A stretch of 64,000 bases of DNA from Magallana gigas (lineage: Eukaryota), in contig NC_088855.1 of NCBI RefSeq assembly GCF_963853765.1, positions 41,726,001 to 41,790,000 on the forward strand, given 5' to 3'. The notes under the pieces are model-generated. The model ran no database searches. It was not told where the DNA came from and saw only the letters and a list, made by a program, of their open reading frames with translations. Position numbers and translations under genes: made by a program. How positions within the stretch are numbered: position 1 is the first letter of the stretch; the number at the start of each line of letters is the position of its first letter. This document shows positions 1 to 59,201 of this stretch, in pieces.

Positions 1-189
1 GCAGACTAACGGGTACCTGGTACATGTACTTCTACATGTAGGTTACAAGTTAGAACTATGCGTACCATTCTACCAGTTCACATAATTTTTCTTGTTTAGC
101 AGTTATGATGTGTACTTAAATTGTCTTTGTTAATGTTTTAAATGTTATAGTAATTTTTTATTCTCTTTTTTTAATCTGACTACTGGCAG

Positions 190-340
190 TACTGGCGTGC
201 GAGCAGTTCTCGCCGAGGACCATTTCTCGCTGGTGCACTGTTACATCATATTTTCGTATGTAATTTTATGTGTTGATAAAATGACGTAACAATGCACTGG
301 TGAGAAATGGTACTCGGCGAGAACTGATCGCACGCCAATA
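190..340. mobile_element. Fold-back MITE (~150 bp) with ~60-bp imperfect terminal inverted repeats
   Basis: TACTGGCGTGCGAGCAGTTCTCGCCGAGGACCATTTCTC... at 190 is mirrored by ...GAGAAATGGTACTCGGCGAGAACTGATCGCACGCCAATA ending at 340; TA at both ends. Confidence 0.75.
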
Positions 341-421
341 TTGATTAATTACAGACAAAAACTGAAGGTTGCGAGTGTTATTTTTAATTGAACAACATTG
401 TTTAAAATAATTCTTTATATA

Positions 422-56800: not shown

Positions 56801-57239
56801 TACCATTGTATGTAAATGGTTTTGGTGAATAAATGAATTTGAGCAGAGTGGATCATTAGTTGGGCTAGCAATGATGCTTACCAGTACACGTACCAATTTT
56901 GATCAAACCTCAGGGATATTAATAATACTTACATTGTCTGTATATATCTTGTTAGGAATTCCATCAATATTATTGAAAACATTAAATTTTCATAGCAATA
57001 TCAATATTAAGGCAGTTGTAAACATTATGAATTTGTATTATTTCTGTCTTTTGTATATGTAAATAATATCAATCTTGTTACTTGTTTTTCAGAGTGACAT
57101 GGAACGGTTGTTTGATGTTCATATAGAGAAAACCTTTCAAAATGACAGTAATAGACAAGAAGTTTGCCAAGAGTTGAAAAAGAGCATGCAGGGCATGAGA
57201 AAGTCCAAATCTGCAATAAACTTCACCACCTATCACTAG
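47827..57239 (+). CDS. BICDL1: Bicaudal-D-related dynein cargo adaptor (BICDR-1/CCDC64), ~649 aa
   Basis: Exons 47827-48111, 49134-49466, 51099-51245, 53830-54027, 54136-54330, 54453-54641, 54762-54956, 55552-55691, 56073-56193, 57093-57239, all phase-compatible. CC1 box [21 protein letters not shown] and C-terminal [21 protein letters not shown] match the BICDL1/2 family. Confidence 0.9.
51340..52208 (+). mobile_element. HINE/Helentron-like element with ~166-bp core repeats in BICDL1 intron 3
   Basis: Sub-TIRs TATACCCCTGCTC / GAGCGGGAGTAT; (GTCT)n microsatellite; 3' hairpin GTGAGCTTTGGCTCAC (52180-52195); TTGTTTAGGCATGCC recurs at ~51721, ~51887, ~52052. Confidence 0.75.
51495..51717. mobile_element. 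TA-flanked MITE inserted into the HINE core repeat
   Basis: TA|TTGTGGAATCATT..TGATTCCACAG|TA. The uninterrupted sister monomer reads CACTATTTGTTTAGG, so the TA was duplicated on insertion. Confidence 0.85.
53416..53835. repeat. Degenerate ~30-35-bp minisatellite ending at the BICDL1 exon 4 acceptor
   Basis: Recurrent AATGAACCTGT(C/T)TGATTT..TTCAAT units, about 12 copies. Confidence 0.65.
56220..56679. mobile_element. MITE with an internal 68-bp inverted duplication in BICDL1 intron 9
   Basis: TIR GGGTGCTTTCCAT (56220-56232) / ATGGAAAGCACCC (56667-56679); internal arms 56240-56307 and 56460-56527 are reverse complements with 3 mismatches. Confidence 0.75.
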
Positions 57240-59201
57240 CAGTGACAGATTAAATATTCTTTACCATTGAATTCCAGTCTGTCATTGCAGAAACCACTCG
57301 TCTTTCATCCAGATTATTAATGTGTCCGTCTTGGTGTTTGTTGGGCCACACCAATATAATTTCTTGTTCATCAGATATTCAGTGAAAAAAGGTACAAGTT
57401 GGCGAACAATTGAATAATAAATTTATATTAAACTATCTACAAAATATAAATTTTTTGGCCGTACATAATTAATTTTGTAAGGATGGAAATAGAACAGAAA
57501 ACAACGCAAAATTTCCTAGGTGCAGGAAATCAATGATACAATGTAATATAAATACGAGCGTGCAGGATTTGATGAAAGAAATTATATTGGTGTGGCCTAA
57601 CATCTTTTGGTATTGTGAGTTTAAGAATGGGTACCAGATAACTCCACAGTGCTAGTTAATGCCCAATATCAAAATGCTTGTACACCTCCACTGTGTCTGT
57701 GTTGGCTTAAATTGTAGCTTTGCCAAATCTTTTAAACCAATGTGATGAAAACTTATGAAATGTTTTTGGTCACATTCATTGTGCTTGCCATGTTTTGTTG
57801 TTGCAATATTAAAAGTTGAAACAAATTCTATGTGTTTTCATTTAATTAAATCTTCAGAATTTCTTTTAAAATTTTTTGCTACTCTGCATATGAACGCATG
57901 AAATTTGACAGTCAGAAACAAGGTGCATAAATCTGATACCTTAAAGCTGAACACCGCTCGTAAATGGGCATCGTCACACAGATACCTGGTATATAAACCC
58001 TTCGATTCCGTTACACCCGATTGCACACTTGAAACTTGTGGCCGACGCGTAGTATTCCTTTTGTGCTCTTTTGATTTTATGCATTTATTTCTTATTCTAT
58101 GTGCATATTCTGCTTGTAATTAATGCATTGACCAACTTATTTGATGTTAGTATTCTCCTGGCTTGAAAAAAGTTCAGAAAATTTGATATTTCATCGCGAC
58201 CTAGTAACACAGCGAGGCGAGATGTTCTCCACACAGGTGAGACCTCTACAGCAAAGTACTTTGAATTGTTTAGAGGTCTGTACCTTATATAGGGGTTGTA
58301 GGGACAGCAGTGATGAAAGAGAAACATGGCAGACTGTGCCCATTTACAAGCGGTGTTCAGCTTTAAAACTTTACAAAGATTCATTTGAAAAGTTTCATTG
58401 GTCCTTTATAATTATAGAGGACATCTTTCTCTACATAGTGAGAAGAATTAATCGAAATAAATTAAAATTGGCAGGCAATTGGAGAACTTTTTATTGTACA
58501 AATGTATCAGCTGTCCATATTCAGTTAATACTGCAATCACAGAATGGACATTTTCCTGGGTTCAGTTGTTTTCTGCCTCACCTTTGCCTTATTATAACCA
58601 TCAATTAGAAGAAAAAAATGAAATCAGAAGCAGGATGTTCAAAGTTTATTGAGAAAAGAAAGTATGAGAAATTTACCAGGTATTGTTCATCAATCACTCA
58701 CTACAGTAGATATTTCAGAAAAAGGATTTCTTAGGGCTAGTAACATACATGTATAATTATATATTCTGAACAAAAACTGTTTATTGTTTTCATTTAATGT
58801 ATTACTATAATAAATTATTTTTTCTTAAAATTTGTACAAAATTATTGAAAAATAGAAATTATTTCTTTTATGAAAAAAAAAATATTTCAGATAAGATACT
58901 TTGACTGACTGTCAACCATTATATATTTTGGTGTAGCTTAACTGTGTTATGCCCTAATGAAAAGTGAAAGTTTTAAAGGTATGTAAGAAACAAAACTACA
59001 TTTAATGAGCTCACTTCACTTTTTACAGTCCAAGTCTGTAAAGATTCTAATTATGAGCTTGAATAAATTACTTCATATAAAAAGCAGACAAAAGTCATTT
59101 GATAAAAATACCACCAAAACTTAATGGAAAAACCCCCAAACTGAGCTAGAAATATACATGAGTAACACTAAAAATAATCATGCAAGATGTCAAAGTTCCC
59201 T

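Follow-up and report, generated by a model that had tools for sequence, protein, structure and literature searches.

We analysed a 64-kb stretch of Magallana gigas NC_088855.1 (the window, to which all positions refer unless a locus is named), in which the eight-letter palindrome TACATGTA occurs in 44 exact copies, treated below as probable excision scars of transposons and called scars in that sense. The left end of the window is occupied by part of a young amplified repeat, the big repeat, which contains a pair of transfer RNA (tRNA)-like units, poly-C/poly-G tracts, a miniature inverted-repeat transposable element (MITE) and a block of tandem units. No open reading frame (ORF) of at least 130 amino acids (aa) was found in the big repeat, and no transposase ORF within the window.

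1 to 5600 (beginning before position 1): big young repeat, at least 5.6 kb, 97-99% identity, at least seven inherited TACATGTA
421 to 776: tRNA-like pair in the big repeat
About 2209 and about 2780: poly-C/poly-G tracts in the big repeat
3700 to 4032: TTAA-flanked MITE in the big repeat
4190 to 4910: tandem units of about 290 bp in the big repeat
TACATGTA, first part: 21, 33, 681, 779, 1272, 1485, 1805, 2245, 2791, 3780, 11362, 12132, 12497, 15078, 19217
TACATGTA, second part: 19272, 21756, 22779, 22950, 25983, 28455, 28722, 29141, 29462, 30746, 32488, 32957, 33973, 34118, 34969
TACATGTA, third part: 37459, 37778, 39632, 39954, 41202, 46651, 46937, 49656, 49668, 49851, 50617, 51264, 56367, 58746

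Abundance of the palindrome

The first-pass annotation had counted about 40 copies of TACATGTA and put its over-representation at about 15-fold. Both figures proved conservative, as dinucleotide-preserving shuffles of the window averaged 2.3 copies and held at most 6, none of 100 shuffles reached 44, and the excess thus amounts to about 19-fold. G/C homopolymers aside, no other 8-mer of the window has a higher z-score. The excess also survives the higher-order Markov correction by which the same annotation proposed to judge it: counted on both strands, 88 occurrences stand against 3.9, 7.8, 16, 43 and 77 expected under models of order 1, 3, 4, 5 and 6, respectively, so that it persists at orders 3 and 4. 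The convergence of orders 5 and 6 on the observed count is circular, since TACATGTA supplies most of its own six- and seven-letter sub-words (44 of the 52 TACATGT and 44 of the 77 ACATGT in the window).

Of the ten copies in the first 6 kb, at least seven lie within the big repeat, and were therefore inherited with it rather than formed by local events. No firm confirmation was obtained for the placement of the copies at 779 and 15078 on element boundaries, which the first-pass annotation had proposed. The 30-bp flanks of the 44 copies show no relation to one another. Twenty random 10-kb pieces taken from all ten chromosomes held 88 copies (0.44 per kb), and the 564-Mb assembly contains 225,258, dispersed over introns and intergenic DNA of every chromosome, versus 75,442 for the reversed word ATGTACAT. 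From base composition alone we estimate about 21,000 copies genome-wide, against which the reversed word is itself enriched about 3.6-fold. The copy at 34118-34125 sits at the end of a minus-strand Abhydrolase_1-like exon frame; read on that strand, it supplies GTAATG directly behind the frame, and the word may overlap a 5' splice site.

Six letters gained at a bare TA

Where comparisons could be polarised, they show a gain of six letters at a pre-existing TA, with one extra substitution to be assumed at 681 and a point difference at 28455. Three sites of the window show the gain.

3780 to 3787: scar fixed in a young subfamily, in the TTAA-flanked MITE nested in the big repeat
29141 to 29148: polymorphic scar; GTGTG-TACATGTA-TGTTG in the reference and run X16, GTGTG-TA-TGTTG in the contigs of runs X5, X9 and X1
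681 to 688: scar in the second tRNA-like unit (644-776), where the first unit (421-549) reads TG

At 3780, older relatives of the MITE (77-85% identity, at loci L009 and L005) read AAGTA followed directly by GTTTC, that is, a plain TA, and the six letters of TACATGTA are retained throughout the 40 best genomic copies (98-100% identity). The site at 29141 emerged from a population check of positions 28400-34399, for which Logan contigs of four runs (X16, X5, X9 and X1) from four separate studies were used. It is a clean segregating TA/TACATGTA indel, one of just two indels in the approximately 5 kb of single-copy sequence of this 6-kb stretch, and its tandem neighbour at 29174 has the short length. 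The first-pass annotation had pointed to a 6-bp difference between the tandem copies at 29113 and 29174 and had allowed for slippage as its cause; the difference is borne out, whereas slippage finds no footing, because the short allele has no CATGTA beside its TA. All nine TACATGTA of the stretch lie at single-copy contig depth.

The population check yielded two further observations. All four other runs contain 13 extra bases (TCAGACAAATTAC) behind 32969, where the reference haplotype has either a private deletion or an error, and positions 31000-32200 behave as a high-copy repeat, with a contig depth 10-100 times that of the flanks and many alternative joints in every run.

The two tRNA-like units of the big repeat read AGATGGCTCAG versus AGATACATGTAGCTCAG, with a unit spacing of 223 versus 229, and ARAGORN called a tRNA-like gene only in the unit that lacks the six letters. 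As judged from this prediction, the insertion at 681 would break the tRNA-like fold. The annotation, which had taken the units for long terminal repeats, described a 6-bp insertion at a TA; its 6-bp difference is real and only the insert-free unit is called, but the counterpart is TG and not a clean TA, for which reason one extra substitution must be assumed. Flank preference at scars is weak and consists of a purine at position -1 (A 0.41 and G 0.28, versus 0.36 and 0.18 around TA generally).

Insertions among copies of the big repeat

A first look at the genome gave 2,483 candidate copies of the big repeat, which has at least 209 copies genome-wide at 97-99% identity. Indels were listed for the window copy and 29 further copies of 3.3 kb (from loci L021-L050) in the same identity range; these 30 copies are 1.65% diverged from their consensus and offer 293 TA sites each.

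2330: insertion of CCGGTA
2962: insertion of CCGGGTA
4119: insertion of CATTGTA
3432 (homologous position, in one repeat copy): 13-bp insertion holding TACCGGTA
3983 to 3984: TA with three different alleles among the 30 copies; in the window's own copy an empty TA hot-spot (ATTATA-TA-GTAC)

Changes in homopolymers, slippage and tandem-unit changes aside, each insertion of at least 5 bp was TA-flanked. The 13-bp insert at 3432 reads TATTAAGTA-CCGG-TATTTAGTA, with CCGG placed between imperfect 9-bp direct repeats and not between two TAs, and may represent a scar with templated repair synthesis. Three inherited TACATGTA could be followed across the 30 copies, and in none had any been lost by a 6-bp deletion.

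For the TA at 3983-3984, a genome-wide pattern search recovered 7 scarred copies versus 209 empty ones (7 of 216), and the scars fall into five types: TACATGTA in three copies, of which two belong to a segmental duplicate, and TACAGTA, TACTGTA, TACACTA and TACTTGTA. The occurrence of several joining products at a single TA, including both resolutions of a CAG/CTG overhang, argues for end joining after excision and against a binding site or slippage. Altogether, the scars at 3780, 29141, 2330, 2962, 3983, 4119, position 5104 of locus L003 and others arose at a TA already present there, with TA now flanking the gained letters on either side. In the polarised comparisons no CATGTA adjoined the bare TA, contrary to the slippage of a pre-existing CATGTA that the first-pass annotation had envisaged as a refutation.

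One big-repeat copy also holds a 547-bp TTAA-flanked insertion (L040:889-1435; TTAA, GGTAGCTCC...CTACT, TTAA) that is absent from the 29 others and is a recent arrival of a TTAA-targeting element.

Sister words and chained scars

All 256 TANNNNTA words were ranked by their observed/expected ratio under an order-3 Markov model in 264 kb. TACATGTA came first (8.2-fold), followed by TACCGGTA (7.1-fold), TATATATA (5.5-fold), TACTAGTA (4.0-fold) and TACCAGTA/TACTGGTA (3.4-fold). TATATATA is a microsatellite, and the three complex top words, TACATGTA, TACCGGTA and TACTAGTA, are all palindromes of the form TA-C-x-x'-G-TA, that is, TAC-AT-GTA, TAC-CG-GTA and TAC-TA-GTA. The doubly CpG-bearing word with a GC core, TACGCGTA, had no occurrence in the 264 kb. 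TACCAGTA and TACTGGTA occupy 30 sites versus 8.8 expected, beside 13 intact TACCGGTA, and are presumably the two CpG-deamination products of the latter. The shorter +5 words TACAGTA/TACTGTA are enriched 1.46-fold, and the +4 words TACATA/TATGTA, which the first-pass annotation had named as footprints for comparison, are hardly enriched at 1.09-fold.

Scars are also chained to one another through shared TAs.

29456 to 29475: triple compound scar TA-CCGG-TA-CATG-TA-CTAG-TA in single-copy DNA, with no indel in the four runs
1479 to 1492: compound scar TA-CCAG-TA-CATG-TA inside the big repeat
1799 to 1812: compound scar TA-CTAG-TA-CATG-TA inside the big repeat
21 to 40: TACATGTA-CTTC-TACATGTA; other genome copies of the big repeat read TACATGTACTTGTACATGTA
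22779 to 22792: compound scar TACATGTACCTGTA
49477 to 49494: two adjoining sister scars, TACCGGTA-TA-TACTAGTA, with a TACATGTA pair 12 bp apart nearby (49656 and 49668)

Further chains were found in the random loci. The 264 kb hold 9 such arrays, versus 0.25 or 1.1 in sequence simulated at order 3 or 5, respectively, and 1 when the sequence is reversed. Across the whole genome there are 13,965 matches to the pattern TACNNGTACNNGTA, versus 3,519 for the reversed control. Eight of the nine arrays mix different cores (CATG, CCGG, CTAG, CCAG and others), which excludes slippage as the source of the mixed arrays, and one is a homogeneous TACATGTACATGTA. About 250 scars supply about 500 of the 24,001 TAs, from which random re-use predicts about 6 chains, so that the chains need no explanation beyond repeated hits on TA.

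The reading TACATGTACTTGTACATGTA in other copies of the big repeat indicates that the array at 21-40 is a triple compound scar that underwent one later substitution in the window copy. The compound scars at 1479 and 1799 recur as a pair 320 bp apart at many places in the genome, and a pair at C1:965685/965691 is separated from the following compound scar by about 1,440 bp, versus 1,458 bp for the 21-40 array in the window. The recurrence of the arrays at 21-40, 1479 and 1799 at many genomic places with equal spacing implies that they are carried by the big repeat, as are the inherited copies counted above.

Probable excision scars of TA-duplicating transposons

We conclude with good confidence that TACATGTA and its sister words TACCGGTA and TACTAGTA are scars at donor sites from which TA-duplicating cut-and-paste transposons of the Tc1/mariner/pogo type have departed. 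Scar formation is very probably still ongoing and would explain many small insertions. In the mechanism proposed, an element with 5'-CA...TG-3' ends would sit between two TAs, and its transposase would cleave precisely at the 3' ends and a few nucleotides within the element at the 5' ends. The flanking DNA would then retain the terminal nucleotides as 3' overhangs, which end joining by the host would seal, TA-CA to TG-TA. The cut might lie 2 nt inside each end, with both overhangs kept, or it might leave 3-nt overhangs C-A-T, C-C-G or C-T-A that would anneal by their self-complementary last two letters; the latter model would yield exactly the palindrome set with AT, CG and TA cores, the GC core being absent. 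Either cut depth would give TA-CA-TG-TA. The cores CA/TG, CC/GG and CT/AG would fit common termini of IS630/Tc1/mariner (ITm) elements, and the source families would have been of the Tc1/mariner/pogo type. Of the two possibilities raised by the first-pass annotation, massive insert-and-excise turnover leaving TA-CA-TG-TA agrees with the gain of six letters at a bare TA, the varied products at one TA, the sister palindromes and the chains.

This mechanism has counterparts in known elements. The ends of Tc1 itself read CAGTG..., and Minos, a Tc1-like element of Drosophila hydei, is said in the 1997 work of Arca et al. to leave a +6 scar composed of four element-end letters plus TA. Minos would resemble the oyster in scar length and differ from it in that its scars show the four terminal letters of either end, whereas the oyster cores are palindromic and both ends could contribute equally. 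Tc1/mariner elements duplicate TA; cleavage is exact at their 3' ends and lies 2-3 nt within the element at their 5' ends (PMC2170065). Tc1 and Tc3 in Caenorhabditis elegans and the ISY100 donor-backbone junction resemble the oyster case in that TA is duplicated and the rejoined donor consists of TA, element-end letters and TA; they are cleaved 2 nt within the element at the 5' ends, which leaves terminal nucleotides behind at the donor (PMC2170065). Scars of Sleeping Beauty and mariner elements are 3' overhangs sealed by non-homologous end joining (NHEJ) at a TA-flanked donor site (PMC7827188). Their TAC(A/T)GTA form is matched by TACAGTA and TACTGTA, both present at the oyster hot-spot TA and enriched as a pair. 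They are +5 scars with fully overlapping 3-nt overhangs, whereas the main oyster product is +6; with 3-nt overhangs, the ends in the oyster must be CAT, CCG or CTA, with just two letters annealing. The biochemistry is known, and it is the scale and readability of the signal that are unusual. Our literature searches found nothing describing the TACATGTA word as a footprint in oyster.

Transposases and the search for source elements

As judged from their open frames, the genome holds transposases of the superfamily that could be active. The Tc1-type domain PF13358 (DDE_3) gave at least 150 matches exceeding the Pfam cut-off. Many of these have frames of 340-380 aa free of stops, among them a 371-aa family (for example at C5:46948529, C3:41042792 and C4:9710680) with six frames of near-identical score (65.6-66.1 bits), and the pogo-type domain PF03184 (DDE_1) gave 33 strong matches. 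No match to PF01359 (mariner) was obtained at E<=1e-25, a threshold too strict for this 80-position model and hence uninformative.

Several observations weigh against the excision model. No clean-ended element of the form TA, CA...TG, TA was found in the 364 kb read, and neither the 30 repeat copies nor the four runs over 28400-34399 provided an allele or paralogue with an element at a scarred TA. Scars far outnumber any visible candidate elements. In C. elegans the usual somatic Tc1 scar is +4, with one overhang kept (78%; PMC13148408), whereas in the oyster +6 dominates and the +4 and +5 words are enriched only 1.09- and 1.46-fold; this predominance would require a joining bias. Finally, 28455, one of the nine sites checked in other runs, reads TTCATGTA there, a point difference implying that some TACATGTA are of chance or mutational origin, in keeping with the approximately 12% expected under the order-3 model. 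A site observed in all three states (empty TA, element and scar) was likewise not encountered, which, given the limited data, is not evidence of absence; the genome-wide pattern for a filled hot-spot TA was unspecific, with 112 matches versus about 99 for the control.

Three kinds of candidate were examined and set aside. TA-flanked inverted repeats starting with CA, CC or CT turned out not to be element ends, since the inverted repeat continues past the TA. Nested insertions between paralogues comprised only the TTAA-flanked 547-bp element of L040 and tandem-unit differences. Clustering of the boundaries of high-scoring segment pairs (HSPs) returned TTAA-type and AT-ended MITEs and a satellite, and no CA-ended TA element.

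Some other sequences were noted alongside. A 143-bp MITE with the terminal inverted repeat ATAAATAGTGCCTGTTTGGG is present at 43353-43495 of the window and at L018:331-473 and L020:4742-4883. A satellite of about 166 bp, with units ending in CTTCTTCTCAG or AAACTAATCAGCCAG, occurs in 6 of 21 sampled pieces (window 19862-20942; L003:3131-5540; L005:5572-5960; L006:3029-4310; L007:97-434), and the L003 unit at 5104 bears a TACCGGTA scar. On the minus strand, 59202-60641 holds a conserved open frame of 479 aa without a Pfam match; its relatives share 98% and 88% identity (Logan assemblies) and 52% (uncharacterised proteins of two Saccostrea species).

Rate, density and decay of scars

The 30 repeat copies permit a rough estimate of the rate at which scars form. 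Seven to eight independent scars among about 8,640 TA-copies, at 1.65% divergence, correspond to about 0.05 substitution-equivalents per TA. When this rate is set against decay through mutation of any one of the eight positions, about 0.6% of TAs are predicted to be scarred; the count of TACNNGTA exceeds expectation by 125-185 per 24,001 TAs (0.5-0.8%). With a mutation rate near 1e-8, the estimate would amount to roughly one new scar in tens of gametes. These figures, rough as they are, show that the current rate suffices for the genome-wide density, with no selection required. One-mismatch neighbours of TACATGTA number 350 versus 278 expected, and perfect sites 132 versus 16 expected, which suggests that the word decays neutrally and has a mean age of a few percent divergence.

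Alternative explanations

The alternative that retains most ground, while still improbable in our judgement, is a TA-specific 6-bp insertion without a resident mobile element, for example by a nuclease or repair activity adding C-N-N-G-T-A at breaks in TA; the first-pass annotation had offered such a process as its second possibility. Two of the difficulties described above speak for it, namely that neither a source element nor a filled site was found and that the +6 form is far more dominant than in the model Tc1 system (PMC13148408). Against it, inverted-repeat ends CA/TG, CC/GG and CT/AG would leave behind precisely the letters that were added, TACAGTA and TACTGTA at one TA are the canonical resolutions of a CAG/CTG overhang heteroduplex, and open Tc1 and pogo transposase frames are abundant. 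We know of no process that inserts 6 bp specifically at TA without an element, which also counts against this explanation.

A function for the palindrome itself, such as the binding site of a dimeric factor or an RNA motif kept by selection, is in our view very unlikely. The word is a perfect palindrome dispersed in introns and intergenic DNA on all chromosomes, as such a motif could be. It is born by insertion at TA and not by point change, segregates as presence/absence, arises freely within junk repeat copies and shows a one-mismatch excess consistent with neutral decay; moreover, sister words with other cores and chains have no obvious binding logic.

Equally unlikely, and largely refuted here, is an origin in slippage of a (TACATG)n-type microsatellite, in point mutation of a TACA/TGTA-rich genome or in the copies of one repeat family: the enrichment of the reversed word over base composition, the homogeneous array, the seven or more window copies inherited in one repeat and the point change at 28455 would fit it, but short alleles are bare TAs with no adjacent CATGTA to slip on, the compound arrays are nearly all heterogeneous, most flanks are unrelated, the nine copies in 28400-34399 are single-copy, and the excess outlasts Markov models of order 3 and 4.

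Implications for the oyster genome

Genomes normally record the insertions of transposons, and their excisions have been thought nearly invisible. In the oyster, reading TACATGTA as an excision scar means that departures are written as a countable word, with about 225,000 copies in addition to the sister words, which provides a direct handle on past and current activity of DNA transposons in a bivalve. With the same reading, the complex 8-mer that ranks highest in the genome has an explanation, and k-mer and motif screens need not mistake TACATGTA for a regulatory element. A class of 6-bp indel polymorphisms that matters for marker design is likewise accounted for, and chained scars show how hexamer repeats can be seeded. 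These observations are of value for their scale and use; they add no new principle.

More tentatively, and as a possibility to which we would not yet commit ourselves, cut-and-paste turnover in the oyster germ line may be high enough for every TA to gain scars at about 5% of the substitution rate per base. Scars would then mark about 0.5-1% of TAs, account for most insertions of 5-7 bp that are not due to slippage, and seed hexamer arrays, serving both as a readable contributor to indels and as a clock for departed DNA transposons. If this is true, scars would be a measurable contributor to the famous indel polymorphism of the oyster.

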